NCBI RefSeq assembly: GCF_011386835.1 | Contig: NC_088806.1 | Location: 930,001-994,000 of the forward strand | Direction of reading: 5' to 3' | DNA: 64,000 nt | Source: Chrysemys picta bellii | Lineage: Eukaryota | Shown: positions 882-54,305 of the stretch, one piece after another | Position numbering within the stretch: position 1 is the first letter of the stretch | Layout: each line of letters starts with the position of its first letter | Translations under genes and position numbers: made by a program | Notes under the pieces: model-generated | What the model was told of the DNA's origin: nothing | Seen by the model: the letters and a program-made list of their open reading frames with translations, nothing else | Database searches by the model: none

Positions 882-950
882 CTGCTGTCGTCAGGGGAAC
901 AGAGTTGACGTGTGTCGCGTTGGCTCTGAAGCACAATTCCTGCAAATGAG
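882..950 (-). CDS. Mucin exon 14, post-SEA linker ([23 protein letters not shown])
   Basis: Acceptor CACTTCTCTTTCAG|, donor G|GTGAGA; 69 nt, phase 1-1; paralog of exon 7. Confidence 0.82.
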
Positions 951-3900
951 CTGAAAGAGAAGTGCCAGACCCATGAGTCGTGCCCCTCAGCACGGACCCT
1001 GGCTGCTTTCCGCCTGGCAGGGCGGTGAGGACCCCAGGGCTGGGCCAGCAGCCACAAGGCTGGAGCTCCGGGAGCAGGCGGGTGTGAGCTATGGGGGTGC
1101 CACTAGCGCTGGTCCTGGGGGGGCCTGTGTCTGCGGAGGGGGGCAGGCCCAGCTGGAGGCTGAGCAGGGAGAAGGGGCCAGCCGGTCTGTGGGACAAATG
1201 CAGCGGAGCAAGGGGGGTCTCCGTCATCACTCCAGGGGCTCTGGAGACCTTCTCAGCTGGCTGGAGCCCCCTGGGAGCCCAAGACAGATGCAGGAAACAG
1301 AGCAGGGACAGCATGCAAGGCTCTGCAGGGACGGGATGAGATGCCAGGTCTGCAGGGCAGCTGGCACCTCACGGCGCCCCAGAAAGCTGCTGGCCAGCGC
1401 TTGGCCCGTGAAAGGGGGACCGACTGGCCAGGCGAGGCGCGGTACAGACCCTGAGAGGAGGCGGTCGAGCCGCTGGTGCAATTGGTTGCATTGAGCAGCG
1501 TGCTGACGTTGGCCACAGCCTGGGTGTAGGTGCTGGTGTAGCTGGCGTAGGGCACGGTCAGGACCACGTGGTGATGCACCACCACGCTGCCCTTGCTGCA
1601 GGTGGAGAAGGAGAGAAGAAAAGCCATCAGAGGGCCACCATATAACACCCACCCCCCTAGTGTTGCCAGGCATCTGGGTTCCAACCAGAAGGCCCGGTCA
1701 AAAGGGGACCCTGGCAGCTCCGGTCGGCACCGCCAACCAGGCCATTAAAAGTCCAGTCGTCGGTGCAGTCCCTGCCTGTCCTGGGGCACAGCGCAGCTCC
1801 CGGAAGCAGCCATCAGGTCCCTGCAGCCCTTAGGCACTGGGCAGCCAGTGAGGCTCCACACGCTGACCTTGCACCTGCAGGCGTCGCCCCCACAGCTCCC
1901 ATTGGTCAGAGTTCCCGGCCAATGGGAGCTGTGGAGCTGGCCCGCGGGAAGCGGGCTGCGTGCAGAGCCTCACTGGCCGCCCATGTGCCTAGGGGCTGCA
2001 GGGACCAGGTAGCAGCTTCCTGGAAGCAGTGGAAAGCTCCGCAGGGACCCCGCACCCTGAACCCCTCCTGCACCCCAACCCAGAGCCCGCCCCTCCCCAA
2101 ACTCCCTCCAGGAGCCCACATCCCCCAACACCCCAACCTCCTGCTCCAGCCCCCTCCTGCACTCCAAGCCCCTCATCCCCGGCCCCACCCCAGAGCTCAC
2201 ACCCCCAGCAAGAACCCACACCCCCTCCCACACTCCAAATCCCTCGGCCCCAGCCCCCCTCCTGTATCCCAAACACCTCATCCCCCGCCACAGCACAGAG
2301 TCCAAACCCCCGCTGGAGTCCTTGCCCCCCCTGCACCCCAACCCCCTACCCCAGTCCATTGAAAGTGAGTGAGGGTGGGGGAGAGCAAGTGATGGAGGGA
2401 GGGGGGATGGAGCGAGCAGGGGTGGGGCCTCAGGGAAGAGACGGGGCTGTTTGATTTTGTGCGACTAGAAAGTTTGCAACTGTTCCCCTCCCCCCCGACC
2501 CCGCGCCTCACCTCAGCTGGATCACCTTAATGCGTAGGAACCCGGGCAGCGTCTGCCTGTAGATCGGGTCCATCTGCAAGACAACAGGCTCAGCATGGTG
2601 GACGCCAAGTGCTCCCCCTGCTCGGTGGAGCCCCGGCCCCCTTCCCAGTGCATAGCCCCGCCCCACTGCAGCAGCTCCCCCCTGCCCAGCGGAGACCCTG
2701 CTCCCCCAACCCAGTGGTTGCTCCTTCCCCCTAGACTGGCTTGGCCCTTCCACGGCTCAACCCGGCCCCAGGGACCATGTGCAGCTGGGCCGTCCCCCAC
2801 GCGCCAAAGCCCCAACCCTCCCATAATGCATTGCACCAGGGCCCCTGCTCCCAGGAGACGCAGCGGCCCTATGTAATGAGGCACTGCCTCCACAGACCCT
2901 GCAATCTTCCCCCTCAGCGGCGCGCCAGACCCCATCTCTGCCCCCACTACAGCAGTTCCCTATTCACCCACAGCTCCGTGCATGCCCCCCAAGCTCCTGG
3001 CAGCTCCTGGGCCCCGTCTCCCTCACCTGGTTGCTGAAGATTGACACAAACGCTCCGAACGCTGTGGACGTTGGATCCTCCATTTTTTCAGAGAAGTTCA
3101 TGTTCGTCACCACCACGATGACACTGATCTCTGCTGGCACCACATCTGCAAGCGGGAAACAAAGCGCAGCATTAGCAGCCCCGAGTGGTCACAAGCCGGG
3201 GCCGGGGGGGCTCGCCAGGCTCGGGTTAAACACCACGAGATCGGGGTGGGGGTAATTATGAGTTTGGATCCCAGCGTGGTGCCTGTTCCAGAGCTGAGCT
3301 CCCCGGAGAGTCAGGAAGCGTTTCCTAAAACCCAACCGAGCTTGGCCCTGTTCCAAATTAAGCCCCTTGCTCCCTGTCCTGCCTTCGGGGGGTCCAGAGA
3401 ACAACTGACCCCATCCCCTCAGACCAGCCCTTCCCCGACCTGCAAGCCGGGCTCAAGTACCCCCGTCCTCCGTGCTGAACTCGCCTGGGTTTAATCTTGC
3501 CCCCTAGGTCAGGCTTTTAGCCCTTGGATCATCCTTTGAGTGGCCACTCCCCAGTTTGCCCCCAGCTCCCCTAATGTGCCCAGAGCTGGCCACAGCCCCC
3601 CAGCTGGGGGCTCACTGGTGCCAACAGAGCAGGACGAACCCTCCCCCATTCACACAACCGGGGTTGATATTAGCCTTTTTTGCACCCACATCACATTGTT
3701 GGCTTGTGTGGTGCCGTTGCAAAAAAGGCTAGTGTCAGTCATGGGCCGCAGCAACAAACACCCCAGTAAAGCCACTAGGGTCGCCGATGCAGCCAACGGG
3801 ACCGTGAGCCCGGGAAAGGGGTTCATGAACCAAACTCTTGGGAGCAAGCTGCTAAGGCTCGGGATCTGACAGTCCAACAGGGTCCCCCGGAGCGATGGGG

Positions 3901-6900
3901 GAGGCCAGAGCCACTCACCGACATTGATGTTGTTCATCACCGTTTCGCACAGCTCCCCTGTAAATCCGGGCAGGCAGAGACACTTGTTCGCAAGGAACGT
4001 CCCTCCGTTCTGGCACCTCAGGGGCTCCAGCGTTATGGCGGGAACTTCAGGGGAGCAAAGAGAGAAATGGGACTGAATGAGGATATAAACCTGAAAGGGA
4101 CCCCTCCTCCAGTTCTGAGATGCAGCCACCTCTGGAGCGTGGCAGCAGGTTACACAGGGACCCCTCACCTGGTGCTGAGATGCAGCCACTTCTAGAGTGC
4201 AGCAGCAGGTTATAAAGGGACCGCTTACCTGGCACTGAGATGCAGCCACATCTGAGGTGAGTGTGGGAAATGGTAATGGTTTGCCACAAGTTTCTAGCCA
4301 GGAATTTGCTTCATATCCCAGGTAACCACTGATAAGGATTATGTCATTTTGGTGTGTGACAGTAGCCCCTGCATGCCCCAAACTGTAATGAGGACCCCAT
4401 GGTGCTGGGCACTGCACCTGCCCCAACTGAGATCAGGGGCCTCGTAGTGCTGGTAAGTGGCTGAGCCAGGAATAGAATCTAGGGCTCCCAATCTGCTGCC
4501 CCCATCTTTCTCGTTGAACCCCGCTCCCCATAGAAACCCACAACTCACCCGCAGTGGTTGTGGTGCCAGTGGTGTTTGCGGGGTGGCTGCTTGTCTCTGG
4601 GATTTTAGTTGGCACAGTCATGGAAGTACTTGTGCTGCTAGACTGAGTCTGAGTCACATGGCTGGTCACGGTGCTGGGTTTCCTCGTGGGAACCGAAGAA
4701 CCTGTCGAGATGGAAAGAGGAGGAGCCATTGACCTTGTAGAAGACACTTCACTTGTTGCTGGCTTTGAAGTGATCATTGTGCTAGAGATGCCGGAGGTGG
4801 ACCCTGCGGTGGTAGGCAAAGAAACTGTCGTCACCAATGTTTTCTCACGGGTGGTGGATTTGGTTGGACTTGGAACAAAATGGGTTGTCACTGGCAGTGT
4901 CTCATTGTGCGTGGATGCCGGAGGACTTGAGTAGGAAACTGTTGTTGCCAGGGTGGTCTCGTTGGTGGTGGGTGAGGATATGGTTGGATAGGACTCTTTT
5001 GTCTTTATGGTAGACTCGGCGGAAGATGTGGTCACAGTCGGCTGAGGAGAGACTGTTGTCAAAGTTGTCTGTCGGCTGCTGAATTCCTCTGTGTTAGGGA
5101 CAGAAAGAGTTGTTACTCCTATACTCTCAGTATTTGTGAATTCAGTATGAGTTGGATGGAGAGGGGCCAACGTCATGGTTGTCTTATTGCTGGTGAATTC
5201 AGGTACGGTTGTATGGGACACAGGTGTCATTGTGGTACTCTCTGTGGAAGATGTGACTACAGTTGGCTGGGATGTGACTTTTGTCAAATTTCTCTCACTG
5301 GTGAAGCTTTCTGCTGTAGCTGTCACAGAGAGTGTAGAAGACCTTGTGAATTCAGTAGCTGTTGGCTGGGGAAGACTTGTTGTGAATGTTGTTTCATTAG
5401 TGGGGACATCCGCTATGGTTGAATGGTGCTCAGTTGTCTTTACAGTACTTCCTGCCAAAGTTGTCTCCTTTCTGCTGGACTCAGACACAGTTGTGTGGGA
5501 GAGAGACGTCACTGAAGGGCTCCCAGTGGAAGGGGTGGTCAGAGCTGGTTGGGAGGTGGCCGTTGTAGAGTTTGTCTCGAGTGTGGAGATTTCAAGTGTA
5601 ACAGGTACAGAAACAGTAGTTGATATTGTGGTCTCAGCATGGGTAGATTTTGCTGTAGTTTCTACAGGAAAACTAGTTGCCATGGTAGTCTCACTGCCTG
5701 AGATTTCTGTAAAAGTCTGATGTGGAGGAGTTGTCATCGGAGCTGCCGCACTGGTAAGGAATTCAGGAAGTGTTGTGTGTGACACGTTTGTCGTTATGAT
5801 ACTCTCAGTAGAAGATGTTGATACAACTGCAGAGTGAGTAGCTCTTGTTGCCACTGTCTCACTAGTGGATGTTTCAGATGTAGCAGAAGCAGAAGGTGTT
5901 GTTGACAATGTTGTTTCACGGTTGGTAAATGCTGTTGAAGCTGGAGCAGAATATGTTGTTGCCAGAGTCGTTTCATTGGTGGTGGTTTCAGAAAGGGTTG
6001 TGTGAGAGACAGAAGTCAAGAAGGTGCTATGGGTGGAAGAGAAGGTCACCGTTGGCGGTGGAGACGATGTTGCTGAGGTTGTCTCACTGTTGCTTGTTTC
6101 CATTGTGGTGTGCACTGAAGATGTTATCTCATTGTGTGTGGATGTCTCTGTCATTGGAAGAGAAGGAGAGCTTGCCATGGTAGTCTCCGTACTTGTAAAT
6201 TCAGTACGAGTTGGATGGGGAGGAACCAATGTCATGGTTGTCTCATTGGAGGTGAATTCAGAGACCGCTGGTTGTGTGACAGTCGTCCTCAAGGGACTTT
6301 CACTGGACGATGCTGTTAGAGTAGACTGGGAAGCCGTCGTCAGACTTTCTTCCCTTGTGGAAATTTGGGCTGTGCTCAGGACCGGAAGGTAGGTTGCCAT
6401 GGGAGTCTCACTTTTTGTATATTCACTAAAAGTAGGGGGAAGAAGAGTCGTTGTTAGGGTTGTCTCACTGGTGAAAGTTTCAGGTAGTGTTGAGAGAGAG
6501 ACACTGGTTGTTATCTCCCTGGAAGATGTTGATACAACTGCAGAATGAGTAGCTCTTGTTCCCACTGTCTCACTAGTGGATGTTTCAGATGTAGCGGACG
6601 CAGAAGGTGTTGTTGACAATGTTGTTTCACGGTTGGTAAATGCTGTTGAGGCTGGAGCAGAAACTGTTGTTGCCAGAGTTGTTTCATTGGTGGTGGTTTC
6701 AGAAAGAGTTGTGTGAGAGACAGAAGTCAAGAAGGTGCTATGGGTGGAAAAGAAGGTCACCATTGGCGGTGGAGAGGATGTTGCTGAGGTTGTCTCACTG
6801 TTGCTTGTTTCCATTGTGGTGTGCACTGAAGATGTTATCGCATTGTGTGTGGATGTCTCTGTCATTGGAAGAGAAGGAGAGCTTGCCATGGTAGTCTCCG

Positions 6901-9900
6901 TACTTGTAAATTCAGTACCAGTTGGATGGGGAGGAACCAATGTCATGGTTGTCTCATTGGAGGTGAATTCAGAGACCGCTGGTTGTGTGACAGTCGTCCT
7001 CATGGGACTTTCACTGGACGATGCTGTCAGAGTAGACTGGGAAGCCGTCGTCAGACTTTCCTCCCTTGTGGAAATTTCAACTGTACTCAGGACCGGAAGG
7101 GAGGTTGCCATGGGAGTCTCACTTTTTGTATATTCACTAAAAGTAGGGGGAAGAAGAGTCGTTGTTAGGGTTGTCTCACTGGTGAAAGTTTCAGGTAGTG
7201 TTGAGAGAGAGACACTGGTTGTTATCTCCCTGGAAGATGTTGATACAACTGCAGAGTGAGTAGCTCTTGTTCCCACTGTCTCACTAGTGGATGTTTCAGA
7301 TGTAGCGGATGCAGAAGGTGTTGTTGACAATGTTGTTTCACGGTTGGTAAATGCTGTTGAAGCTGGAGCAGAAACTGTTGTTGCCAGAGTCGTTTCATTG
7401 GTGGTGGTTTCAGAAAGGGTTGTGTGAGAGACAGAAGTCAAGAAGGTGCTATGGGTGGAAGAGAAGGTCACCGTTGGCGGTGGAGAGGATGTTGCTGAGG
7501 TTGTCTCACTGTTGCTTGTTTCCATTGTGGTGTGCACTGAAGATGTTATCTCATTGTGTGTGGATGTCTCTGTCACTGGAAGAGAAGGAGAGCTTGCCAT
7601 GGTAGTCTCCGTACTTGTAAACTCAGTACGAGTTGGATGGGGAGGAACCAATGTCATGGTTGTCTCATTGGAGGTGAATTCAGAGACCGCTGGTTGTGTG
7701 ACAGTCGTCCTCAAGGGACTTTCACTGGACGATGCTGTCAGAGTAGACTGGGAAGCCGTCGTCAGACTTTCTTCCCTTGTGGAAATTTGGGCTGTGCTCA
7801 GGACCGGAAGGGAGGTTGCCATGGGAGTCTCACTTTTTGTATATTCACTAAAAGTAGGGGGAAGAAGAGTCGTTGTTAGGGTTGTCTCACTGGTGAAAGT
7901 TTCAGGTAGTGTTGAGAGAGAGACACTGGTTGTTATCTCCCTGGAAGATGTTGATACAACTGCAGACTGAGTAGCTCTTGTTCCCACTGTCTCACTAGTG
8001 GATGTTTCAGATGTAGCGGATGCAGAAGGTGTTGTTGACAATGTTGTTTCACGGTTGGTAAATGCTGTTGAAGCTGGAGCAGAAACTGTTGTTGCCAGAG
8101 TTGTTTCATTGGTGGTGGTTTCAGAAAGGGTTGTGTGAGAGACGGAAGTCAAGAAGGTGCTATGGGTGGAAGAGAAGGTCACCGTTGGCGGTGGAGAGGA
8201 TGTTGCTGAGGTTGTCTCACTGTTGCTTGTTTCCATTGTGGTGTGCACTGAAGATGTTATCTCATTGTGTGTGGATGTCTCTGTCATTGGAAGAGAAGGA
8301 GAGCTTGCCAAGGTAGTCTCCGTACTTGTAAATTCAGTACCAGTTGGATGGGGAGGAACCAATGTCACGGTTGTCTCATTGGAGGTGAATTCAGAGACCG
8401 CTGGTTGTGTGACAGTCGTCCTCAAGGGACTTTCACTGGACGATGCTGTCAGAGTAGACTGGGAAGCCGTCGTCAGACTTTCTTCCCTTGTGGAAATTTG
8501 GGCTGTGCTCAGGACCGGAAGGGAGGTTGCCATGGGAGTCTCACTTTTTGTATATTCACTAAAAGTAGGGGGAAGAAGAGTCGTTGTTAGGGTTGTCTCA
8601 CTGGTGAAAGTTTCAGGTAGTGTTGAGAGAGAGACACTGGTTGTTATCTCCCTGGAAGATGTTGATACAACTGCAGAGTGAGTAGCTCTTGTTCCCACTG
8701 TCTCACTAGTGGATGTTTCAGATGTAGCGGACGCAGAAGGTGTTGTTGACAATGTTGTTTCACGGTTGGTAAATGCTGTTGAAGCTGGAGCAGAAACTGT
8801 TGTTGCCAGAGTCGTTTCATTGGTGGTGGTTTCAGAAAGGGTTGTGTGAGAGACAGAAGTCAAGAAGGTGCTATGGGTGGAAGAGAAGGTCACCGTTGGC
8901 GGTGGAGAGGATGTTGCTGAGGTTGTCTCACTGTTGCTTGTTTCCATTGTGGTGTGCACTGAAGATGTTATCTCATTGTGTGTGGATGTCTCTGTCACTG
9001 GAAGAGAAGGAGAGCTTGCCATGGTAGTCTCCGTACTTGTAAATTCAGTACGAGTTGGATGGGGAGGAACCAATGTCACGGTTGTCTCATTGGAGGTGAA
9101 TTCAGAGACCGCTGGTTGTGTGACAGTCGTCCTCAAGGGACTTTCACTGGACGATGCTGTCAGAGTAGACTGGGAAGCCGTCGTCAGACTTTCTTCCCTT
9201 GTGGAAATTTGGGCTGTGCTCAGGACCGGAAGGGAGGTTGCCATGGGAGTCTCACTTTTTGTATATTCACTAAAAGTAGGGGGAAGAAGAGTCGTTGTTA
9301 GTGTTGTCTCACTGGTGAAAGTTTCAGGTAGTGTTGAGAGAGAGACACTGGTTGTTATCTCCCTGGAAGATGTTGATACAACTGCAGAGTGAGTAGCTCT
9401 TGTTCCCACTGTCTCACTAGTGGATGTTTCAGATGTAGCGGACGCAGAAGGTGTTGTTGACAATGTTGTTTCACGGTTGGTAAATGCTGTTGAAGCTGGA
9501 GCAGAAACTGTTGTTGCCAGAGTTGTTTCATTGGTGGTGGTTTCAGAAAGGGTTGTGTGAGAGACAGAAGTCAAGAAGGTGCTATGGGTGGAAGAGAAGG
9601 TCACCGTTGGCGGTGGAGAGGATGTTGCTGAGGTTGTCTCACTGTTGCTTGTTTCCATTGTGGTGTGCACTGAAGATGTTATCTCATTGTGTGTGGATGT
9701 CTCTGTCACTGGAAGAGAAGGAGAGCTTGCCATGGTAGTCTCCGTACTTGTAAATTCAGTACGAGTTGGATGGGGAGGAACCAATGTCATGGTTGTCTCA
9801 TTGGAGGTGAATTCAGAGACCGCTGGTTGTGTGACAGTCGTCCTCAAGGGACTTTCACTGGACGATGCTGTCAGAGTAGACTGGGAAGCCGTCGTCAGAC

Positions 9901-12900
9901 TTTCTTCCCTTGTGGAAATTTGGGCTGTGCTCAGGACCGGAAGGGAGGTTGCCATGGGAGTCTCACTTTTTGTATATTCACTAAAAGTAGGGGGAAGAAG
10001 AGTCGTTGTTAGGGTTGTCTCACTGGTGAAAGTTTCAGGTAGTGTTGAGAGAGAGACACTGGTTGTTATCTCCCTGGAAGATGTTGATACAACTGCAGAG
10101 TGAGTAGCTCTTGTTCCCACTGTCTCACTAGTGGATGTTTCAGATGTAGCGGATGCAGAAGGTGTTGTTGACAATGTTGTTTCACGGTTGGTAAATGCTG
10201 TTGAAGCTGGAGCAGAAACTGTTGTTGCCAGAGTCGTTTCATTGGTGGTGGTTTCAGAAAGGGTTGTGTGAGAGACAGAAGTCAAGAAGGTGCTATGGGT
10301 GGAAGAGAAGGTCACCGTTTGCAGTGGAGAGGATGTTGCTGAGGTTGTCTCACTGTTGCTTGTTTCCATTGTGGTGTGCACTGAAGATGTTATCTCATTG
10401 TGTGTGGATGTCTCTGTCACTGGAAGAGAAGGAGAGCTTGCCATGGTAGTCTCCGTACTTGTAAATTCAGTACGAGTTGGATGGGGAGGAACCAATGTCA
10501 TGGTTGTCTCATTGGAGGTGAATTCAGAGACCGCTGGTTGTGTGACAGTCGTCCTCAAGGGACTTTCACTGGACGATGCTGTCAGAGTAGACTGGGAAGC
10601 CGTCGTCAGACTTTCTTCCCTTGTGGAAATTTGGGCTGTGCTCAGGACCGGAAGGGAGGTTGCCATGGGAGTCTCACTTTTTGTATATTCACTAAAAGTA
10701 GGGGGAAGAAGAGTCGTTGTTAGGGTTGTCTCACTGGTGAAAGTTTCAGGTAGTGTTGAGAGAGAGACACTGGTTGTTATCTCCCTGGAAGATGTTGATA
10801 CAACTGCAGAGTGAGTAGCTCCTGTTCCCACTGTCTCACTAGTGGATGTTTCAGATGTAGCGGATGCAGAAGGTGTTGTTGACAATGTTGTTTCACGGTT
10901 GGTAAATGCTGTTGAAGCTGGAGCAGAAACTGTTGTTGCCAGAGTCGTTTCATTGGTGGTGGTTTCAGAAAGGGTTGTGTGAGAGACAGAAGTCAAGAAG
11001 GTGCTATGGGTGGAAGAGAAGGTCACCGTTGGCAGTGGAGAGGATGTTGCTGAGGTTGTCTCACTGTTGCTTGTTTCCATTGTGGTGTGCACTGAAGATG
11101 TTATCTCATTGTGTGTGGATGTCTCTGTCATTGGAAGAGAAGGAGAGCTTGCCATGGTAGTCTCCGTACTTGTAAATTCAGTACGAGTTGGATGGGGAGG
11201 AACCAATGTCATGGTTGTCTCATTGGAGGTGAATTCAGAGACCGCTGGTTGTGTGACAGTCGTCCTCAAGGGACTTTCACTGGACGATGCTGTCAGAGTA
11301 GACTGGGAAGCCGTCGTCAGACTTTCTTCCCTTGTGGAAATTTGGGCTGTGCTCAGGACCGGAAGGGAGGTTGCCATGGGAGTCTCACTTTTTGTATATT
11401 CACTAAAAGTAGGGGGAAGAAGAGTCGTTGTTAGGGTTGTCTCACTGGTGAAAGTTTCAGGTAGTGTTGAGAGAGAGACACTGGTTGTTATCTCCCTGGA
11501 AGATGTTGATACAACTGCAGACTGAGTAGCTCTTGTTGCCACTGTCTCACTAGTGGATGTTTCAGATGTAGCGGACGCAGAAGGTGTTGTTGACAATGTT
11601 GTTTCACGGTTGGTAAATGCTGTTGAAGCTGGAGCAGAAACTGTTGTTGCCAGAGTTGTTTCATTGGTGGTGGTTTCAGAAAGGGTTGTGTGAGAGACGG
11701 AAGTCAAGAAGGTGCTATGGGTGGAAGAGAAGGTCACCGTTGGCGGTGGAGAGGATGTTGCTGAGGTTGTCTCACTGTTGCTTGTTTCCATTGTGGTGTG
11801 CACTGAAGATGTTATCTCATTGTGTGTGGATGTCTCCGTCATTGGAAGAGAAGGAGAGCTTGCCAAGGTAGTCTCCGTACTTGTAAATTCAGTACCAGTT
11901 GGATGGGGAGGAACCAATGTCATGGTTGTCTCATTGGAGGTGAATTCAGAGACCGCTGGTTGTGTGACAGTCGTCCTCAAGGGACTTTCACTGGACGATG
12001 CTGTCAGAGTAGACTGGGAAGCCGTCGTCAGACTTTCTTCCCTTGTGGAAATTTGGGCTGTGCTCAGGACCGGAAGGGAGGTTGCCATGGGAGTCTCAAT
12101 TTTTGTATATTCACTAAAAGTAGGGGGAAGAAGAGTCGTTGTTAGGGTTGTCTCACTGGTGAAAGTTTCAGGTAGTGTTGAGAGAGAGACACTGGTTGTT
12201 ATCTCCCTGGAAGATGTTGATACAACTGCAGAGTGAGTAGCTCTTGTTCCCACTGTCTCACTAGTGGATGTTTCAGATGTAGCGGACGCAGAAGGTGTTG
12301 TTGACAATGTTGTTTCACGGTTGGTAAATGCTGTTGAAGCTGGAGCAGAAACTGTTGTTGCCAGAGTCGTTTCATTGGTGGTGGTTTCAGAAAGGGTTGT
12401 GTGAGAGACAGAAGTCAAGAAGGTGCTATGGGTGGAAGAGAAGGTCACCGTTTGCAGTGGAGAGGATGTTGCTGAGGTTGTCTCACTGTTGCTTGTTTCC
12501 ATTGTGGTGTGCACTGAAGATGTTATCTCATTGTGTGTGGATGTCTCTGTCACTGGAAGAGAAGGAGAGCTTGCCATGGTAGTCTCCGTACTTGTAAATT
12601 CAGTACGAGTTGGATGGGGAGGAACCAATGTCATGGTTGTCTCATTGGAGGTGAATTCAGAGACCGCTGGTTGTGTGACAGTCGTCCTCAAGGGACTTTC
12701 ACTGGACGATGCTGTCAGAGTAGACTGGGAAGCCGTCGTCAGACTTTCTTCCCTTGTGGAAATTTGGGCTGTGCTCAGGACCGGAAGGGAGGTTGCCATG
12801 GGAGTCTCACTTTTTGTATATTCACTAAAAGTAGGGGGAAGAAGAGTCGTTGTTAGGGTTGTCTCACTGGTGAAAGTTTCAGGTAGTGTTGAGAGAGAGA

Positions 12901-39900: not shown

Positions 39901-42900
39901 GGTCGGCCGAGGTCGCGGAGATGCTCTCGGTGTGAGAAGACGAGGTGCCCGTGGAGCTCTTGGTAGAGGTCGTGGGGCTGCTCTCGGTGGCAGAAGAGGT
40001 GGGGCCTGTGGCGGGTTCGACCGAGGTCGTGTGGCTCCTCTCGCTGGGAGAGGAGGAGATTCCCATTGTGGTCTGAGCCACGGTCGTATGGCTGCTCTCG
40101 CTGCGAGAGTAAAAGGTGCCAGTGGTGGACTCTGCAGAAGTCGTTTGGCTACTCTGCTTGGGCAACGAAGAGGTGGTGCCCGTGGTGGGTTCGGCTGAGG
40201 TCGTGGAGATACTCTCACTGGGAGCGGAGGAGGTTCTTGTTGTCTCAGCCATGGTCGTGTGGTTGCTCTCGCTGGGAGAGGAGCTGGTGCCCATTGTGGG
40301 CTCAGCCGAGGTTGCGGAGATGCTCTCGGTGTTAGAAGAGGAGGTGCCCGTGGAGCTCTCGGCTGAGGTCGTGTGGCTGCTCTCGTTGGGAGAGGAAGAG
40401 GTACCTGTCATACTCTCGGCCGAGGTCGTGTGGCTGCTCTCGCTGTGAGAGGTGGAGGTGCCAGTGGTGGGTTCGGCCGAGGCCGTGTGACTGCTCAGGC
40501 TGGGAGTGGAGGAACTGGGTATTGTGGTCTCGGCCAGGGTCGTGTTGCTGCTCTCGCTGCGAGAGTAAAAGGTGCCAGTGGTGGACCCTGCAGAAGTCGT
40601 TTGGCTACTCTGCTTGGGCAACGAAGAGGTGGTGCCCGTGGTGGGTTCGGCCGAGGTCGTGGAGATACTCTCGCTGGGAGAGGAGGAGGTTCTTGTTGTC
40701 TCAGCCATGGTCGTGTGGCTGCTCTCGCTGGGAGAGGAGGAGGTGCTCGTTGTGGGCTCGGCCGAGGTCACGGAGATGCTCTCGGTGTGAGAAGAGGAGA
40801 TGCCCGTGGAGCTCTTGGCAGAGGTCGTGGGGCTGCTCTCGCTGGCCGAGGAGGAGGTGCCCGTGGTGGGTTCGACCGAGGTAGTATGGCTGCTCTCGCT
40901 GGGAGAGGAGGAGGTTCCAGTGTTGGGCTCGGCCGAGGTCGCGGAGATGCTCTCGGTGTGAGAAGAGGAGGTGCCCGTGGAGCTCTTCGCAGAGGTCGAG
41001 GGACTGCTCTCGCTGGCAGAAGAGGTGGTGCCCGTGGTGGGTTCGACCGAGGTTGTATGGCTGCTCTCACTGGCAGATGAAGAGGTGCCAGTGGTGGACT
41101 CAGTCGCGGTCATGTGGGTACTCTGCTTGGGCGACGAGGACGTGCCTGTGGCGGGTTCGACCGAGGTCGTGTGGCTGCTCTCGCTGGCAGAGGTGCCAGT
41201 GGTGGACTCGGTCGCGGTCATGTGGGTACTCTGCTTGGGCGACGAGGACGTGCCTGTGGCGGGTTCGACCGAGGTCGTGTGGCTGCTCTCGCTGTGAGAG
41301 GAGGAGGTGCCAGTGTTGGGTTCGACCGAGGTTGTATGGCTGCTCTCGCTGGGAGAGGAAGAGGTACCTCCGGTAGTCTCGGCCGAGGTCCTGTGGCTTG
41401 TCTTGCTGGGAGAGGAGGAGGTTCCAGTGTTGGGCTCGGCCGAGGTCGCCGAGATGCTCTCGGTGTGAGAAGAGGAGGTGCCCGTGGAGCTCTCGGCTGA
41501 GGTCGTGTGGCTTGTCTTGCTTGCAGAGGAGGAGGTTCCTGTTTTGGTCTCAGCCACGGTCGTCTGGCTGCTCTTGCTGGCAGAAGAGGTGGTGCCCGTG
41601 GTGAACACGGCTGAGGTCGTGTGGCTGCTCTCGCTGGGAGAGGAGGAGATGCCCGTGGTGGGTTTGACCGAGGTTGTACGGCTGCTCTCACTGACAGAGG
41701 AAGAGGTGCCCGTGGTGGGTTCGACAGACATTGTATGGCTGCTCTCACTGGCAGATGAAGAGGTGCCAGTGGTGGACTTGGTCGCGGTCATGTGAATACT
41801 CTGCTTGGGCGACGAGGACGTGCCTGTGGCGGGTTCGACCGAGGTCGTGTGGCTGCTCTCGCTGGGAGAGGAGGAGGTTCCCATTGTGGTCTCAGCCACG
41901 GTCGTATGGCTGCTCTCGCTGCGAGAGTAAAAGTTGCCAGTGGTGGACTCTGCAGAAGTCGTTTGGCTACTCTGCTTGGGCAACGAAGAGGTGGTGCCCG
42001 TGGTGGGTTCGGCCGAGGTCGTGGAGATACTCTCGCTGGTAGAGGAGGAGATTCTTGTTGTCTCAGCCATGGTCGTGCGGCTGCTCTCGCTGGGAGAGGA
42101 GGTGGTGCCCATTGGGGGCTCGGCCGAGGTTGCGGAGATGCTCTCGGTTTGAGAAGAGGAGGTGCCCGTGGAGCTCTCGGCCGAGGTCGTGTGGCTGCTC
42201 TCGCTGGGAGAGGAAGAGGTACCTGCAATAATCTTGGCCGAGGTCGTGTGGCTGCTCTCGCTGTGAGAGGTGGAGGTGCCAGTGGTGGGTTCGGCCGAGG
42301 CCGTGTGACTGCTCAGGCTGTGAGTGGAGGAACTGGGCATTCTGGTCTCGGCCAGGGTCGTGTTGCTGCTCTCGCTGCGAGAGTAAAAGGTGCCAGTGGT
42401 GGACCCTGCAGAAATCGTTTGGCTACTCTGCTTGGGCAACGAAGAGGTGGTGCCCGTGGTGGGTTCAGCCGATGTCGTGGAGATACTCTCGCTGGGAGAG
42501 GAGGAGGTTCTTGTTGTCTCAGCCATGGTCGTGTGGCTGCTCTCGCTGGGAGAGGAGGAGGTGCTCGTTGTGGGCTCGGCCGAGGTCGCGGAGATGCTCT
42601 CGGTGTGAGAAGAGGACGTGCCCGTGGAGCTCTTCGCAGAGGTTGAGGGACTGCTCTCGCTGGCAGAAGAGGTTGTGCCCGTGGTGGCTTCGACCGAGGT
42701 TGTATGGCTGCTCTCACTGGCAGATGAAGAGGTGCCAGTGGTTGACTCGGTCGCGGTCATGTGGGTACTCTGCTTGGGCGACGAGGACGTGCCTGTGGCG
42801 GGTTCGACCGAGGTCGTGTGACTGCTCTCGTTGTGAGAGGAGGAGGTGCCAGTGTTGGGCTTGGCCGAAGTCGCGGAGATGCTCTCGGTGTGAGAAGAGG

Positions 42901-45900
42901 AGGTGCCCGTGGAGCTCTCGGCTGAAGTCGTGTGGCTTGTCTCGCTGGCAGAAGAGGAGGTGCCCGTGGTGGGTTTGACCGAGGTTGTATGGCTGCTCTC
43001 GCTGGGAGAGGAGGAGGGGCCCGTGGTGGGTTCGACCAAGGTTGTATGGCTGCTCTCGCTGGGAGAGGAAGAGGTACCTCCGGTAGTCTCGGCCGAGGTC
43101 CTGTGGCTTGTCTTGCTGGGAGAGGAGGACGTTCCAGTGTTGGGCTCAGCCGAGGTTGCCGAGATGCTCTCGGTGTGAGAAGAGGAGGTGCCCGTGGAGC
43201 TCTTGGCAGAGGTCGTAGGGCTGCTCTCGCTGGGCGAGGAGGAGGTGCCCGTGGTGGGTTCGACCGAGGTTGTATGGCTGCTCTCGCTGGGAGAGGAGGA
43301 GGTTCCAGTGTTGGGCTCGGCCGAGGTTACGGAAATGCTCTCTGTGTGAGAAGAGGAGGTGCCCGTGGAGCTCTCGGCTGAGGTCATGTGGCTTGTCTTG
43401 CTGGGAGAGGAGGAGGTTCCTGTTGTGGTCTCAGCCACGGTCGTGTGGCTGCTCTCGCTGGGAGAAGACGTGGTGCCCGTGGTGAACACGGCTGAGGTCG
43501 TGTGGCTGCTCTCGCTGGGAGAGGAGGAGGTGCCAGTGGTGGATTCGACCGAGGTTGTATGGCTGCTCTCACTGGCAGATGCAGAGGTGCCAGTGGTGGA
43601 CTCGGTCGCGGTCATGTGGGTACTCTGCTTGGGCGACGAGGACGTGCCTGTGGCGGGTTCGGCCAAGTTCGTGGAGATACTCTCACTGGGAGAGGAGGAG
43701 GTTCTTGTTGTCTCAGCCATGGTCGTGTGGCTGCTCTCTCTGGGAGAGGAGGAGGTTCCAGTGTTGGGCTCGGCCGAGGTCGCGGAGATGCTCTCGGTGT
43801 GAGAAGAGGAGGTGCTCGTGGAGCTCTCGGCCGAGGTCGTGTGGCTTGTCTTGCTGGGAGAGGAGGAGGTTCCTGTTGTGGTCTCAGCCACGGTCGTCTG
43901 GCTGCTCTTGCTAGCAGAAGAGGTGATGCCCGTGTTGAGCACGGCTGAGTTCGTGTGGCTGCTCTCGCTGGGAGAGGAGGAGGTGCCCGTGGTGGGTTCG
44001 ACCGACATTGTCTGGCTGCTCTCACTGGCAGATGAAGAGGTGCCAGTGGTGGACTCGGTCGCGGTCATGTGGGTACTCTGCTTGGGCGACGAGGACGTGT
44101 CTGTGGCGGGTTCGACCGAGGTCGTGTGGCTGTTCTCACTGTGAGAGGAGGAGGTGCCAGTGTTGGGCTCGGCCGAGGTCGCGGAGATGCTCTCGGTGTG
44201 AGAAGAGGAGGTGCCCGTGTAGCTCTCGGCCGAGGTCATGTGACTTTTCTCGCTGGGAGAGGAGGAGGTTCCCATTGTGGTCTCAGCCACGGTCGTATGG
44301 CTGCTCTCGCTGCGAGAGTAAAAGGTGCCAGTGGTGGACTCTGCAGAAGTCGTTTGCCTACTCTGCTTGGGCAACGAAGAGGTGGTGCTCGTGGTGGGTT
44401 CGGCCGATGTCGTGGAGATACTCTCGCTGGGAGAGGAGGAGGTTCTTGTTGTCTCAGCCATGGTCGTGTGGCTGCTCTCGCTGGGAGAGGAGGAGGTGCC
44501 CGTTGTGGGCTCGGCCGAGGTCGCGGAGATGCTCTCGGTGTGAGAAGAGGAGGTGCCATTGGAGCTCTTGGCAGAGGTCGTGGGGCTGCTCTTGCTGGGA
44601 GAGGAGGAGGGGCCCGTGGTGGGTTCGACCGAGGTTGTATGGCTGCTCTCGCTGGGAGAGGAAGTGGTACCTCCAGTAGTCTCGGCCGAGGTCCTGTGGC
44701 TTGTCTTGCTGGGAGAGGAGGAGGTTCCAGTGTTGGGCTCGGCCGAGGTCGCCGAGATGCTCTCGGTGTGAGAAGAGGAGGTGCCCGTGGAGCTCTCGGC
44801 TGAGGTCGTGTGGCTTGTCTTGCTTGCAGAGGAGGAGGTTCCTGTTGTGGTCTCAGCCACGGTTGAGTGGCTGCTGTCGCTGGGCGAGGAGGAGGTGCCC
44901 GTGGTGGGTTCGACCGAGGTTGTATGGCTGCTCTCGCTGGGAGAGGAGGAGGGGCCAGTGTTGGGCTCGGCAGACGTCGCAGAGATGCTCTCGGTGTGGG
45001 AAGAGGAGGTGTCCGTGGAGCTCTCGGCCGAGGTCATGGGGTTGCTCTCGCTGGGAGAGGAGGAGGTGCCCGTGGAGCTCTCGGCCGAGGTCGTGTGGCT
45101 TGTCTTGCTGGGAGAGGAGGAGGTTCCTGTTGTGGTCTCAGCCACGGTCGTGTGGCTGCTCTCGCTGGGAGAAGAGGTGGTGCCCGTGGTGAACACGGCT
45201 GAGGTCGTGTGGCTGCTCTCACTGGCAGATGAAGAGGTGCCAGTGGTGGACTCGGTCGGGGTCATGTGGGTACTCTGCTTGGGCGACGAGGACGTGCCTG
45301 TGGCGGGTTCGACCGAGGTCGTGTGGCTCCTCTCGCTGGGAGAGGAGGAGGTGCCCGTGGTGGGCTCGGCCGAGGTTGTGGAGATTCTCTCGGTGTGGGA
45401 AGAGGAGGTGCCCGTGGAGCTCTTGGCCGAGGTCGTGGGGCTATTCTCGCTGTGAGAACTGGAGGTGCCCTTGGTGAACACAGCTGAGGTCGTGAGGCTG
45501 CTCTCGCTGTGAGAGGAGGAGGTGCCCATGGTGGTTGTGGCTATCCCTGTTTTAGTCATCCCTGAGGTGCTGTTTGCTGTGGTTGTTGTCGCTGTCCCTG
45601 TTTGCAATGATATTTCTGCTCAATATTTTATCTCCAGTGTTATAATTTGAAGCTGATATTTGCAACAGGACCTAAGATTGTTGTACACCCAAAGGTCATT
45701 TCTCAGGGTTTTTGGCACCAAAATCTCTTTGGTTATCCCGCCTTGAGAATCCTCCCTCCCTGCCGATTTCCCAGCGTCTCTCATATGCACATTCCTCACC
45801 GGTTTACTTGGGTCCCTATTCCCATAGAAATCACCTTCCAGTTCACAAAGGCAAATTCAGGTGGTTCTGCGGTGACCATTCATGGGACCAGGGAAACCCT

Positions 45901-51900: not shown

Positions 51901-54305
51901 CACACCCGTGGGACTAGTAAATGTGACAAAGTGGGACTGTTCTTAATGTTTTCCTCAGTTTCCCCTATGCAGTTCTTAAGTATCTAGGGGGTGGGATCAG
52001 GGTGTCTGGTTGCTGCAGAGCAAAGGGCCAGGGTACATAAATGCCCGACACTCTGTCTCCTGGCAACTGATGGCCTGGGCCCCTCCTCTGCAAAGGTGCC
52101 AACTGAAGGTGTTGGAGACAAAGGGGTCAGGTGGCCTCCTGGCCCGGGAAAGAGACAAAGCCCAGAGAAGGAGGGGCTGGACGGGAGTTTGGAGCTGGCT
52201 GGGGACTGGAAGGGAGGGCGGACGTGGGTTTGCCTCGCGGGGCCCCAGAATGGACCCGGCGGAGGGGTCCCATTCGCTGTACTTACAAGCTCTGTTTTAG
52301 ACCATGTTCCTGTCATCTAATAAACCTCTGTTTTACTGGCTGGCTGAGAGTTACGTCTGACTGCGAAGTGGGGGGTGCAGAACCCTCTGGCTCCCCCAGG
52401 ACCCCGCCTGGGCGGACTCGCTGTGGGAAGCCCACGGAGGGGCATATGCTGAATGCTCCCAGGGGAGACCCAGGAGGTGAAGCCATGTGAGCTTCTTGCC
52501 CTGAAGACGGTCTGCTCCGAGGGAGAGGAGGCTCCCCAAAGTCCTGACTGGCTTTGTGGGGAGCAGTTCCAGAGCATCGCCCGGGGACGCCGTGACAGTG
52601 ACAGACCAGGGCATAGACCGGACCCTGGGGTTTTGTGATATCCCTCTCCCCATCCCCTGCACGCACATACCACTGCTCCCCCCAAACCCATCCTCCCTCC
52701 GTCCCCCCACCTCCACACCCCTCCTCTCCCAACCCCTCCATCCCCCACCTCCAGCCATCCATCCTCCATCCACCCCACACACTGCTCCATCCATCCATAC
52801 CCTTGTCCCCCCACACCCTCCTCCATCCATCCTCCCACCCCACTGTGCCCCCCACCCCTCCTCCTTCCATCTCCCCCCACACTGCTCCATCCATCCATCC
52901 CCTGGTCCCCACCACACCCCTCCTCCATAGACTCATAGAAGATTAGGGTTGGAAGAGACCTCAGGAGGTATCTAGTCCAACCCCCTGCTCAAAGCAGGAC
53001 CAACCCCAACTAAATCATCCCAGCCAGGGCTTTGTCAAGCCGGGCCTTAAACACCTCTAAGGAAGGAGATTCCACCACCTCCCTAGGTAACCTATTCCAG
53101 TGCTTCACCACCCTCCTAGTGAAATAGTGTTTCCTAATATCCAACCTAAACCTCCCCCGCTGCAACTTGAGACCATTGCTCCTTGTTCTGTCATCTGCTA
53201 CCACCGAGAACAGGCTAGATCCATCCTCTTTGGAACCCCCCTTCAGGTAGTTGAAAGCAGCTATCAAATCCCCCCTCACTCTTCTCTTCTGGAGACTAAA
53301 CAATCCCAGTTCCCTTAGCCTCTCCTCATAAGTCATGTGCTCCAGACCCTAATCATTTTTGTTGCCCTCCGCTGGACTCTTTCCAATTTTTCCACATCCT
53401 TCTTGTAGTGTGGGGCCCAAAACTGGACACAGTACTCCAGATGAGGCCTCACCAATGTCAAATAGAGGGGAACGATCACGTCCCTCGATCTGCTGGCAAT
53501 GCCCCTACTTATACAGCCCAAAACGCCGTTAGCCTTCTTGGCAACAAGAGCACACTGTCGACTCATATCCAGTTCTCGTCCACTGTGACCCCTAGGTCCT
53601 TTTCTGCAGAACTGCTACCTAGCCATTCGGTCCCTAGTCTGTAGCAGTGCATGGGGTTCTTCTGTCCTAAGTGCAGGACTCTGCACTTGTCCTTCCATCC
53701 CCCCCACCACCACCACTCCTCCCCAACCCCTCCTGAATCCACCCCTCCATCCCCCCACACCCCTCCTTCATCTACCCCCCCACCACTCCACCCCCCTAAC
53801 TGCTCCTTCATCCACCCCTCCATTCCCCCCACACACTGCTCCATCCATCCATCCCCCTGTGCCCTCACACCCCTCCATCCCCCCAACCCCTCCTTCATCC
53901 ACCCCTCCATCCCCCCACCTCCAGCCATCCATCCCTGTCCCTCCCACACCCTTCCATCCCCCCCCACTGCCTCCAACTACCCCTTCCACCCCTCTCCCCA
54001 CACCCCTCCTCCATTCATGCCCCCACACTCACACACTATAGGGTGCCATGGGGGGCTGGGATGCCGGGGACAGGGGGGCTGGAGGGTGTCCAGGCAGCCA
54101 TGGGGGGCTGCAGTGGATGGGGGTGCCAGCTAATTCTGTAGCCCTCTGTGTCCCAGGGACTTAGCTGGGCCCCCGCCCCACCCCATGGCTCGCCCTCCCC
54201 CCAGTGGTCCCCTGGGAACTCACCCCCCATGGAGACCAGGGCCAGGGCAGCCCAGAGGCAGAGCGCCACAGGCATCATCCCCACGCTCCAGTCATGGGTC
54301 CTCAT
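882..54305 (-). CDS. Giant membrane-type mucin, MUC3A/MUC12/MUC17 family, with two tandem PTS-EGF-SEA modules; 3'-partial (continues off the left edge)
   Basis: 14 exons with GT-AG boundaries and compatible phases sum to 36,790 nt from the ATG at 54278. The Cys-rich exon AVC..YYFPL..CVSNC..C...C...GPQCR matches the MUC3A-type juxtamembrane pattern as I recall it. Both SEA domains carry GS(V/I)(V/I)V motifs. Exact orthology is not determinable here. Confidence 0.85.
1450..1595 (-). CDS. Mucin exon 13, SEA domain 2 part c with GSVVV cleavage motif
   Basis: Acceptor TTTTCTTCTCTCCTTCTCCACCTGCAG|; encodes [16 protein letters not shown]...NCTS. The donor G|GTCTGT is non-consensus, so the 3' boundary is less certain. 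Confidence 0.83.
1658..2484. mobile_element. Degenerate hAT-like DNA transposon remnant in an intron
   Basis: Left end tagtgttgcca and right end tttgcaact resemble decayed TAGGGTTGCCA-type TIRs; C-rich low-complexity interior; no clear TSD. Confidence 0.45.
2512..2573 (-). CDS. Mucin exon 12, SEA domain 2 part b ([21 protein letters not shown])
   Basis: Acceptor CCTGTTGTCTTGCAG|, donor AG|GTGAGG; 62 nt, phase 0-2. Confidence 0.85.
3027..3145 (-). CDS. Mucin exon 11, SEA domain 2 part a ([40 protein letters not shown])
   Basis: Acceptor TTTGTTTCCCGCTTGCAG|, donor CAG|GTGAGG; 119 nt, same size as exon 4. Confidence 0.88.
3330..3700 (-). mobile_element. Old degenerate CR1 fragment
   Basis: Segments gttccaaattaagccccttgctccctgtcc and attagccttttttgcacccacatcacattgttggct resemble the CR1 3' region seen at 53100-53560. 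Confidence 0.4.
3919..4044 (-). CDS. Mucin exon 10, EGF-like domain ([23 protein letters not shown])
   Basis: Acceptor TTTCTCTCTTTGCTCCCCTGAAG|, donor G|GTGAGT; 126 nt, phase 1-1, same size as exon 3. Confidence 0.9.
4105..4260. repeat. Three copies of a 60-bp intronic tandem repeat
   Basis: ctgagatgcagccac recurs at 4115, 4175 and 4235. Confidence 0.8.
4549..22691 (-). CDS. Mucin exon 9, giant PTS exon B (18,143 nt, ~6,047 aa; Thr/Ser-rich)
   Basis: ORF 4433..22486 extends in frame upstream to the acceptor TAATTTTCCCCACTTAG|T GAG (phase 2). Donor G|GTGAGT at 4548 (phase 1). Confidence 0.9.
5790..21400 (-). repeat. Coding VNTR, ~22 copies of a 711-bp (237-aa) unit
   Basis: Near-identical shadow ORFs recur every 711 bp from 5929 to 20860 (22 anchors). 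Confidence 0.97.
22900..23400. repeat. GC-rich ~88-bp tandem repeat (5-6 copies) containing CTCF-consensus motifs
   Basis: ggggagag anchor at 23023, 23111, 23198, 23286 and 23374; cagcgccccctag and agcgccccctgctg in most units. Confidence 0.88.
23617..23788 (-). CDS. Mucin exon 8, Cys-rich/EGF2 ([58 protein letters not shown])
   Basis: Acceptor TTTCGTCCCCCTCTCCCTAG|, donor CG|GTGAGT; 172 nt, phase 1-2; six Cys in MUC3-family spacing. Confidence 0.9.
24145..24234. mobile_element. Short palindromic MITE-like element
   Basis: ggccagacccttagctggtgtgaa ... ttcgcaccagctgcggctctgacc form imperfect inverted termini. Confidence 0.4.
24322..24381 (-). CDS. Mucin exon 7, post-SEA linker ([20 protein letters not shown])
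   Basis: Acceptor CTCTCTCTTTCTTTCAG|, donor G|GTAAGA; 60 nt, phase 1-1; paralogous to exon 14 ([13 protein letters not shown]). Confidence 0.85.
24882..25015 (-). CDS. Mucin exon 6, SEA domain 1 part c with GSIIV cleavage motif
   Basis: Acceptor CTCCTCTCCTCCCGCACAG|, donor G|GTGACG; 134 nt, phase 2-1; encodes [16 protein letters not shown]...NCTSNDT. Confidence 0.9.
25253..25311 (-). CDS. Mucin exon 5, SEA domain 1 part b ([20 protein letters not shown])
   Basis: Acceptor TTTGTTTCTTTTCCAG|, donor AG|GTAAGA; 59 nt, phase 0-2. Confidence 0.88.
25716..26670 (+). mobile_element. 5'-truncated CR1 LINE fragment (RT domain), internally deleted
   Basis: ORF 25790..26506 contains [24 protein letters not shown] and [10 protein letters not shown] motifs; there is a jump to the 3' region near 26540. 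Confidence 0.93.
27035..27153 (-). CDS. Mucin exon 4, SEA domain 1 part a ([40 protein letters not shown])
   Basis: Acceptor TTTGTTTCCTGCTGGCAG|, donor CAG|GTGAGG; 119 nt, phase 1-0; F..L.N..S..F..F SEA signature. Confidence 0.9.
27800..27925 (-). CDS. Mucin exon 3, EGF-like domain 1 ([23 protein letters not shown])
   Basis: Acceptor TTTTCTCCTTCTCTCCTGAAG|, donor G|GTGAGT; 126 nt, phase 1-1; EGF cysteine spacing. Confidence 0.9.
28216..45615 (-). CDS. Mucin exon 2, giant PTS exon A (17,400 nt, ~5,800 aa; Ser/Thr/His-rich)
   Basis: ORF 28190..45607 has no stops. Donor G|GTGAGT at 28215 (phase 1). Acceptor GAGCAG|AA at 45616 is phase-1 compatible but has a weak pyrimidine tract. Confidence 0.88.
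28780..45500 (-). repeat. Coding VNTR of ~57-bp (19-aa) diverged units with higher-order blocks (~290 units)
   Basis: Units such as [19 protein letters not shown] and [19 protein letters not shown], with 18- and 20-aa variants; block spacings 1254, 1425, 2964 and 4503 bp are multiples of 57. Confidence 0.93.
46030..46170. repeat. GGAGCCAGGACTCCTGGGTTCT-family tandem repeat (left part, split by CR1)
   Basis: agaacccaggagtcctggctcccagcccc units. Confidence 0.8.
46382..49498 (-). pseudogene. CR1 ORF2 (endonuclease plus RT), fragmented by frameshifts, stops and a MITE insertion
   Basis: Fragments at 48719-49498, 48234-48662, 47906-48199, 47402-47641 and 46382-47206. Confidence 0.92.
47297..47420. 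mobile_element. 124-bp hAT-superfamily MITE nested in the CR1 RT region
   Basis: Perfect 13-bp TIR TAGGGTGACCAGA/TCTGGTCACCCTA and perfect 8-bp TSD CTAGTTAC (47289-47296 and 47421-47428). Confidence 0.95.
49534..50457 (-). CDS. CR1 ORF1 protein (zinc-finger-like Cys motif plus SGNH/esterase-like domain), 307 aa
   Basis: CTEC..C.RC motif; VVGD(L)II, PGAK, HVGTND and DGLHLN blocks. Confidence 0.85.
   Translation of the reverse strand: MQAEAQQQSGGYQVYCTECSMSDYLPRGRVAYVCIRCKELLALRDHVRTLEARVVELEELREAERYVDEAFRDTVELSHLRSDSPCAVEEDERPREAEQSTGAEGNLPIVGTLLPDGAGITSRTEVTSPGEGTPVARKRQVLVVGDLIIRNVDSWVCDDRENRTVTCLPGAKVADLSRHLDRLMCSAGEESVVVVHVGTNDIGKGRRHVLEAKFRLLGRRLKSRTSMVAFSEMLPVPRAGPGRQAELQSLNAWMRRWCREEGFTFIRNWGNFWNGGSLYRKDGLHLNQSGTRLLALNIKKVVEQFLN
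50609..50860. repeat. GGAGCCAGGACTCCTGGGTTCT-family tandem repeat (right part)
   Basis: Several gagaacccaggagtcctggctcc units. Confidence 0.85.
51922..52597 (+). mobile_element. Solo LTR of a Gypsy family related to the element at 58435-62322
   Basis: TGTGACAAAGTGGGACTGTTCTT start resembles the TGTGACGAACTGGGACTGTTCTT start of the other LTR. It has AATAAA at ~52319, a shared ctctcagccagccagtaaa block (on the reverse strand) and a ...GTGACA end. No clean TSD. Confidence 0.75.
52640..54030. repeat. C-rich CCATCC/CCCCCAC low-complexity tract interrupted by a CR1 fragment
   Basis: Similar ccatccatccc-type sequence on both sides of 52926-53693. Confidence 0.7.
52926..53693 (-). mobile_element. 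5'-truncated CR1 3'-end fragment
   Basis: catagactcatagaa tail; ORFs with [23 protein letters not shown] and RRVRGDLI. Confidence 0.93.
54224..54305 (-). CDS. Mucin exon 1, signal peptide (M)[17 protein letters not shown]
   Basis: Hydrophobic N-terminal stretch followed by the donor G|GTGAGT (phase 1) at 54223. Start is ATG 54278 or the upstream in-frame ATG 54305. Confidence 0.72.

Follow-up and report, generated by a model that had tools for sequence, protein, structure and literature searches.

The minus strand of the DNA analysed here very probably carries one gene, whose single product is an exceptionally large type-I membrane mucin from the MUC3/MUC12/MUC17 family, with its extracellular unit present twice in series. 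The stretch analysed, termed the window, comprises 64,000 nt of Chrysemys picta bellii (C16:930001-994000, from a source genome of 2.37 Gb); positions in the window are given as plain numbers and positions on the whole contig carry the prefix C16. Reading of splice sites and frames yields 19 minus-strand coding exons with canonical GT-AG borders and compatible phases, which join into one uninterrupted reading frame, 12,459 codons or 12,459 aa long, over a gene of ~67 kb. Fourteen of the 19 exons lie inside the window, while five lie past its start and reach 12.9 kb out. Exons 1-14 sum to 36,799 nt, or 12,266 codons, in agreement with the product of at least ~12,260 aa proposed in a preliminary description of this DNA. 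Chance is ruled out as an explanation, since two open frames of 17-18 kb, 13 phase-compatible canonical splice pairs and spliced contigs point to the same arrangement. The human mucins MUC3A, MUC3B, MUC12 and MUC17, encoded at 7q22, each have one PTS domain, one SEA domain and one EGF pair, whereas the turtle PTS-EGF-SEA unit is present twice, with two PTS and two SEA domains on one spliced transcript and in one frame. The turtle protein also differs from the human 7q22 mucins in that its first EGF2 is shortened, and a second mucin domain of 6,047 aa then replaces the transmembrane (TM) segment.

Two stop-free giant frames run along the minus strand, 45619..28193 (5809 aa) and 22705..4436 (6090 aa), and small EGF-like and SEA-like frames sit between and after them on the same strand. 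Each giant frame corresponds to a PTS domain encoded by a single exon, of 17,382 nt (Ser+Thr 57%) in the first case and 18,143 nt (Ser+Thr 49%) in the second. All exons given below are on the minus strand, and a slash within a sequence marks an exon boundary. Exon 1 (54224..54305) starts with the ATG at 54305 and is a putative signal-peptide exon; it codes for a hydrophobic, signal-peptide-like core, as judged by reading the sequence. Its phase-1 donor (GGGG/GTGAGT) fits the phase-1 acceptor of exon 2, or exon A, which encodes the first PTS domain, PTS-A (28216..45597; 17,382 nt, phase 1 to 1). The acceptor cag/GG at 45597 was adopted for exon 2, the alternative cag/AA at 45615 adding 6 aa, while the donor at 28216 is confirmed by a spliced contig.

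Module 1 follows in six small exons, placed by splice sites and by the joints of RNA-like contigs, and for exons 3 and 4 also by Pfam matches of orthologues. Exon 3 (27800..27925, 126 nt) encodes EGF-like 1 and exon 4 (27035..27153, 119 nt) the start of SEA, which continues through exon 5 (25253..25311, 59 nt) and exon 6 (24882..25015, 134 nt), the latter containing the autocleavage-type motif N-G-S-I-I-V. Exon 7 (24322..24381, 60 nt) encodes the end of SEA and a linker, and exon 8 (23617..23788, 172 nt, six Cys) the first part of EGF-like 2. Intron 8 (22692..23616; 925 nt, GT..AG) separates module 1 from exon 9, or exon B, which encodes the second PTS domain, PTS-B (4549..22691; 18,143 nt, phase 2 to 1); its acceptor at 22691 is present in spliced contigs from three runs.

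Module 2 is formed by exon 10 (EGF-like 1; 3919..4044, 126 nt), exon 11 (start of SEA; 3027..3145, 119 nt), exon 12 (SEA; 2512..2573, 62 nt), exon 13 (SEA with K-G-S-V-V-V; 1450..1595, 146 nt) and exon 14, the last in the window (882..950, 69 nt). The EGF2 and TM exons that the preliminary description proposed to seek in the adjacent DNA were found beyond base 1: the counterpart of exon 8 (first part of EGF2) lies at C16:929757-929928, and ~1 kb past it a single exon at C16:928600-928767 holds the end of EGF2, the TM and the start of the tail. Two further tail exons (C16:922687-922811 and C16:922112-922191) and a final exon coding for ...PQVTRI and the stop (C16:917131-917166) were placed using the 'mucin-3A' of Caretta caretta (P0003) as a guide. 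The join of exon 1 to exon 2 and all joins of module 2 and the tail are based on homology and splice signals, and the choice of donor for exon 17 could alter the length of the protein by 4 aa. The last intron, between the last two tail exons, contains a proline-rich minisatellite, ...PVPAQSPHPAPKP..., at C16:917108-920000; this lies outside the model and gives open frames of ~900 aa in several frames on both strands.

The single-gene reading depends on the join between exon 8 and exon B. Exon 8 ends in phase 2 with GPQC plus CG, reading ...CAGTGCCG/GTGAGT at 23617. Exon B begins in phase 2 at 22691, after ...CCCCACTTAG/T GAG (the sequence just before this start being TTTTCCCCACTTAG), and an in-frame TAA lies at 22708-22706. 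The join reads GPQC-R-ELITT in frame, so that both borders and the joined peptide are as the preliminary description had them. Its proposed check, a search for reads across 23617/22691, was carried out on transcript contigs mapped over 22450-28250; these are assembled contigs, those of runs X1-X3 coming from one study and being RNA by guess, and those of X16 being DNA. All three RNA-like runs contained the join: their contigs leave out 22692-23616 to the base, the omitted piece having minus-strand GT..AG ends, and depth at the joint is 27 (X1), 6.8 (X2) and 8.4 (X3). No such joint was seen in the DNA run X16, which bears the same organism label and covers the unique flanks of intron 8 continuously.

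Runs X1-X3 behave like RNA, since exons are covered while most intron bins have zero depth, including 23420-23613, the part of intron 8 outside its minisatellite. Depth in introns is confined to the minisatellite of intron 8, the interspersed repeat spanning 25554-26717, and stretches of introns 3-5 with low-depth contigs (25115-25265, 27222-27372 and 27408-27598). Contig 14 of X2 (857 nt) links exons 4, 5, 6, 7 and 8 to exon B, and contig 2 of X1 (614 nt) starts in the last part of exon A, crosses exons 3-7 and reaches the beginning of exon 8; together they place PTS-A, module 1 and PTS-B in one message. None of the mapped contigs spans PTS-A to PTS-B in one piece. For the stretch containing module 2, X1-X3 hold 8-13% of the sampled words, where ~15% would be expected from exons only, and the other RNA-like runs of the species hold 0; this suggests tissue-specific co-expression of the module-2 stretch with the rest of the gene in X1-X3. 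Retention of intron 8 would place a TGA directly after exon 8, and isoforms terminating there may exist. Within intron 4, the stretch 25554-26717 has a summed contig depth of 10^3-10^6 in all runs, as befits a very abundant interspersed repeat, which accounts for spurious joints at this position.

These contigs bear on a second reading, in which two neighbouring mucin genes (A with module 1, and B with module 2) are linked by occasional read-through splicing and only appear as one, a 'conjoined gene' artefact. Tandem MUC3-type paralogues on the same strand do occur here, the gene downstream (C16:879,258-890,349) having the canonical single layout PTS-EGF-EGF2-TM, and modules 1 and 2 have diverged as separate paralogues would, to 44% identity. 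Against this, the upstream gene would have no TM, tail or terminator, and the downstream gene would have no promoter-proximal or signal exon in the 925-nt intron. The junction contig is moreover the sole form in three samples, with zero depth in the unique part of the intron (23420-23613), and the in-frame join is kept in the gene model of Chelonoidis abingdonii. A frame scan and a tblastn search with the real TM exon bear out the earlier statement that intron 8 contains neither a TM nor a signal-peptide exon; against the whole window, the same tblastn query returned noise only (best E 0.046, on the wrong strand). Searches of intron 8 for relics of a TM, tail or 5' exon returned its own minisatellite only. 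Two features that the preliminary description regarded as fatal to the single gene were looked for and not found: a TM or a poly(A)-type terminus downstream of exon 8, and a signal or promoter exon feeding exon B. We consider two separate genes very unlikely.

Even less probable is an artefact of assembly, in which collapse of the minisatellite in intron 8 would have hidden the TM and tail exons of one gene and the 5' exon of the next. Intron 8 consists mostly of this GC-rich array (88-bp units with a 175-bp higher-order period, ~6.4 copies, 22837-23403), and short-read DNA contigs from an independent sample break at 22991 and 23383 and never cross it, as would be expected of a stretch liable to collapse. 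The spliced contigs, however, run from exon 8 into exon B whatever the true length of the intron, and the same join is present in another genus (Chelonoidis). In searches of the whole genome the TM exon had no other close match, the runner-up (E 0.012) being in the neighbouring gene, and exon-8-type sequences numbered only two, both in the present gene. The arrangement is therefore best read as one gene with two modules.

The two modules mirror each other in exon size and phase, as noted in the preliminary description (126/126, 119/119, 59/62, 134/146 and 60/69), and the correspondence extends to a sixth exon pair (172/172). All six small exons of module 1, their six counterparts in module 2 and the TM exon have AG...GT borders. 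The proteins are 44% identical over 227 aa and both contain G-S-(V/I)-(V/I)-V, the SEA autocleavage motif, as N-G-S-I-I-V in module 1 and K-G-S-V-V-V in module 2; this is a motif match only. At the DNA level, blastn aligns the exon cores of the two modules at 67-77%, while the introns do not align and the comparison yielded no breakpoint. The EGF-SEA-EGF block was recognized via orthologues 80-84% identical to the window modules, on which a Pfam scan gave SEA above the curated cut-off together with EGF matches; SEA was found in the proteins of Chelonoidis abingdonii (P0002) and Caretta caretta (P0003), and twice in that of a lizard (P0004). An AlphaFold model of the Chelonoidis module-1 orthologue (pLDDT 86) has the SEA domains of TMPRSS6, MUC16 and HAT as its best PDB matches, and by this model the module-1 orthologue is predicted to have a SEA fold.

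The modules differ in how EGF2 ends. EGF2 of module 1 breaks off past its fourth Cys, exon 8 being spliced to PTS-B instead, and the CxC...WY.G..C loop and the TM are absent; because the missing part is a self-contained CxC...C loop (the C5-C6 pair), module 1 would be left with no unpaired Cys. In module 2, EGF2 is completed as C-F-C-QHSDWYWFTGNHC, followed by ~25 hydrophobic residues on the same exon, the end of EGF2 on this exon past the window reading CQHSDWYWFTGNHC. The cytoplasmic tail that follows is ~80 aa long and ends ...RPQVTRI, which matches the pattern of a class-I PDZ-type motif (S/T-x-hydrophobic).

The two PTS domains differ clearly in composition and repeat unit, which upholds the proposal of two chemically different glyco-domains. 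In PTS-A a Ser/Thr/His-rich unit of 57 nt (19 aa) is repeated ~294 times (28762-45534), and in PTS-B a Thr/Ser/Leu/Val-rich unit of 711 nt (237 aa) is repeated 22 to about 23 times; neither domain contains Cys. Serine makes up 32% of PTS-A and 20% of PTS-B, and threonine 25% and 29%, respectively. Histidine accounts for a further 4.5% of PTS-A, whereas Leu/Val/Phe account for 15% of PTS-B, and N-x-S/T sequons number 13 in PTS-A against 52 in PTS-B. The tail of PTS-A nevertheless contains a B-type unit: by blastn, 28264..28760 on the minus strand is 89-90% identical at the nucleotide level to ~500 nt of each PTS-B unit, the units matched spanning 5940-22495. Nucleotide identity is only 67-77% for the module exons, and likewise for the far 3' ends of the two PTS exons, and it follows from this difference that the ~500-nt direct repeats bracketing module 1 are young. 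The pattern suggests gene conversion between the PTS-A tail and the PTS-B repeats. Such direct repeats on either side of module 1 are a substrate for unequal recombination, which could delete or multiply this module.

Several SEA domains in one mucin have been described for MUC16, termed the only mucin known with multiple SEA domains (PMC1552070), while the human MUC3-cluster genes are described as single-module (PMC9578598). The turtle protein resembles MUC16 (CA125) in being a membrane mucin with several SEA domains in series and glycosylated linkers between them, and the module-1 model finds some of its best structural matches in solved MUC16 SEA domains, but at the level of the fold only (9-15% identity). 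MUC16 differs in having dozens of SEA repeats of ~156 aa, no EGF and short linkers; the turtle protein has two SEA domains only, flanked by EGF-like domains, and all of its sequence relatives are of the MUC3/12/17 type. The preliminary description called the architecture unrecognized. This stands for the full-text literature searched, where no description of a two-SEA MUC3-type mucin was found, but not for protein models, as it is already present, unremarked, in XP_032632398.1 and XP_053116802.1. Both are automatic models without annotation of this feature; the module pair is recent, or homogenized, in the lizard model and old in turtles.

Relatives were sought with a profile of both exon-8 peptides, which matched 35 proteins among 1.84 billion. 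Most of these have a SEA domain, ~115 aa, CxC..WY.G..C and then a TM, like module 2. The nearest database relatives are all named mucin-3A, -3B, -12 or -17, and the nearest proteins come from turtles. XP_032632398.1 of Chelonoidis abingdonii ('mucin-3B-like', partial, 564 aa) comprises the PTS-A tail, module 1, the join and the start of PTS-B; its join reads GPQC-R-EPTTTVAG, and it is 80% identical and colinear across the join over 471 aa. XP_074979920.1 of Caretta caretta (427 aa) aligns with module 2, TM and tail at 84% identity.

A comparable layout is found in the lizard Hemicordylus capensis, where XP_053116802.1 ('mucin-3B-like') contains two EGF-SEA-EGF2 modules with the same phase-2 joint at the exon-8 donor. 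In the lizard locus a first PTS exon, 13 kb long or more, precedes module 1, whose exon-8 donor (TGC TA/GTGAGT) opens a 393-nt intron; this intron ends at a phase-2 acceptor (cag/T), behind which come a second and short PTS exon, then module 2 and the TM. The join lies at 20984-22052 of locus L006 (CM050095.1). The second PTS comprises ~80 aa (residues 642-725 of XP_053116802.1) and shares 95-98.5% identity with the end part of the first. In the tree the lizard modules group as a sister pair (support 100/99) and, together with the high identity of the PTS pieces, this indicates a duplication that is recent or has been homogenized. The 'mucin-17' of Alligator was considered as a further two-module gene and rejected, as it is a 4.8-kb single-module gene with no second module within 10 kb.

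With regard to origin, an old duplication or gene fusion, as first proposed, fits the 44% protein identity, the 67-77% DNA identity of the module exons and the unalignable introns. That the duplication is old is indicated by the turtle modules being only 44% identical. The two-module gene would have arisen either by an early doubling of a cassette with compatible phases, reaching from the PTS exon to exon 8, or by fusion of two tandem paralogues, and the exchange of repeat sequence between the PTS-A tail and PTS-B would have come later. Fusion, in which a deletion between intron 8 of one complete gene and intron 1 of its downstream neighbour would have merged the two, is to us a real possibility, if one with slightly less than an even chance. 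In the tree, turtle module 1 groups with Chelonoidis (100/100) and, less firmly, module 2 with Caretta (85/80), while module 1 falls outside the group of module 2, the alligator and the squamate modules (93/90), which speaks for fusion. A tandem array of paralogues would supply the substrate, and the acceptor of exon B looks makeshift, being in phase 2 and 5 codons past a stop where exon A is in phase 1. An AU test, from which the long-branch rows Carassius and Heterocephalus module 2 were omitted, nevertheless does not reject a turtle-only clade of modules 1 and 2, though with p = 0.056, barely above 0.05. Fusion is also disfavoured by intron 8, which has no relic of TM, tail or 5' exons, and by the lizard, which displays an internal cassette duplication with the same exon-8 donor, a partial PTS exon and a phase-2 acceptor, the duplicated pieces being 95-100% identical at the nucleotide level. 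From nt 196 onwards, the first part of exon B is also similar to the end part of exon A, and likewise in Hemicordylus capensis.

Returning to the cassette, we tentatively suggest, while leaning slightly against the proposal as a whole, that the block 'PTS exon-EGF-SEA-first half of EGF2', with phase 2 in and out, can be duplicated as a unit and has multiplied independently in turtles (long ago) and in a cordylid lizard (recently). Sauropsid MUC3-type mucins would then be converging on a segmented, MUC16-like design in which each SEA domain would be a non-covalent breaking point. If so, the outer PTS-A storey could be shed under force or by microbes with the chemically different PTS-B storey kept, and the direct repeats (~500 bp, ~90% identical) would make module number vary within populations via unequal recombination.

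The surroundings of the gene also bear on its ancestry. The neighbouring gene at C16:879258-890349, on the minus strand, is a single-module MUC3-type gene with a 6.3-kb PTS frame and EGF, EGF2 and TM exons, each of the three being 38-40% identical to module 2. Weaker TM-exon-like matches occur on the same strand at ~54-kb spacing (C16 825326, 771329 and 715587), and this pattern suggests a tandem array of MUC3-type genes. About six VMO1 (VOMI) exons are clustered 120-217 kb upstream of the mucin gene (C16:1113578-1210915), and in Alligator mississippiensis (locus L012) VOMI and ACHE lie within 10 kb of 'mucin-17'; the conserved synteny supports an ancestry of the locus shared with the mammalian 7q22 cluster. 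Intron 1 contains a CR1-like LINE in the orientation of the gene (46385-50463, minus strand), with a GDSL-lipase-like ORF1 domain, an endonuclease and a reverse transcriptase, and further upstream the 3' fragment of a second LINE (53013-53614, minus strand). Just upstream of the mucin gene is an open frame of 907 aa (58976-61696, minus strand) with SCAN, zinc-knuckle and integrase H2C2 domains, either a Gypsy-derived SCAN-domain gene or a retroelement relic. A 500-N gap or masked stretch (62323-62822) also lies upstream of the gene.

The protein is known here from its predicted frame, with translation and processing of a 37-kb mRNA assumed. Its order would be a signal peptide, PTS-A (~5,790 aa), module 1 (EGF1-SEA-truncated EGF2), PTS-B (~6,050 aa), module 2 (EGF1-SEA-complete EGF2), the TM and a cytoplasmic tail of ~80 aa ending in T-R-I. 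From what is known of the family, both PTS domains would form densely O-glycosylated rods, and each SEA domain would cleave itself between G and S of G-S-(V/I)-(V/I)-V during folding, the halves remaining non-covalently associated. The mature molecule would then consist of three chains linked by two force-sensitive SEA joints. PTS-B would be the inner storey, held in the apical membrane, and PTS-A the outer one on top of it, and we infer that a glycocalyx of two layers would result.

MUC3, MUC12 and MUC17 build the glycocalyx of enterocytes, and their SEA domain is regarded as a mechanical fuse. A protein with a pair of these fuses in series and two glyco-domain chemistries offers a test case for how force is partitioned and how the height and layering of the glycocalyx are set, and the two-module gene also informs how mucin genes grow by duplication of exon cassettes. 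As automatic annotation breaks these genes into fragments (427 aa and 564 aa, compared with ~12,460 aa), the membrane-mucin repertoires of reptiles are probably misdescribed.
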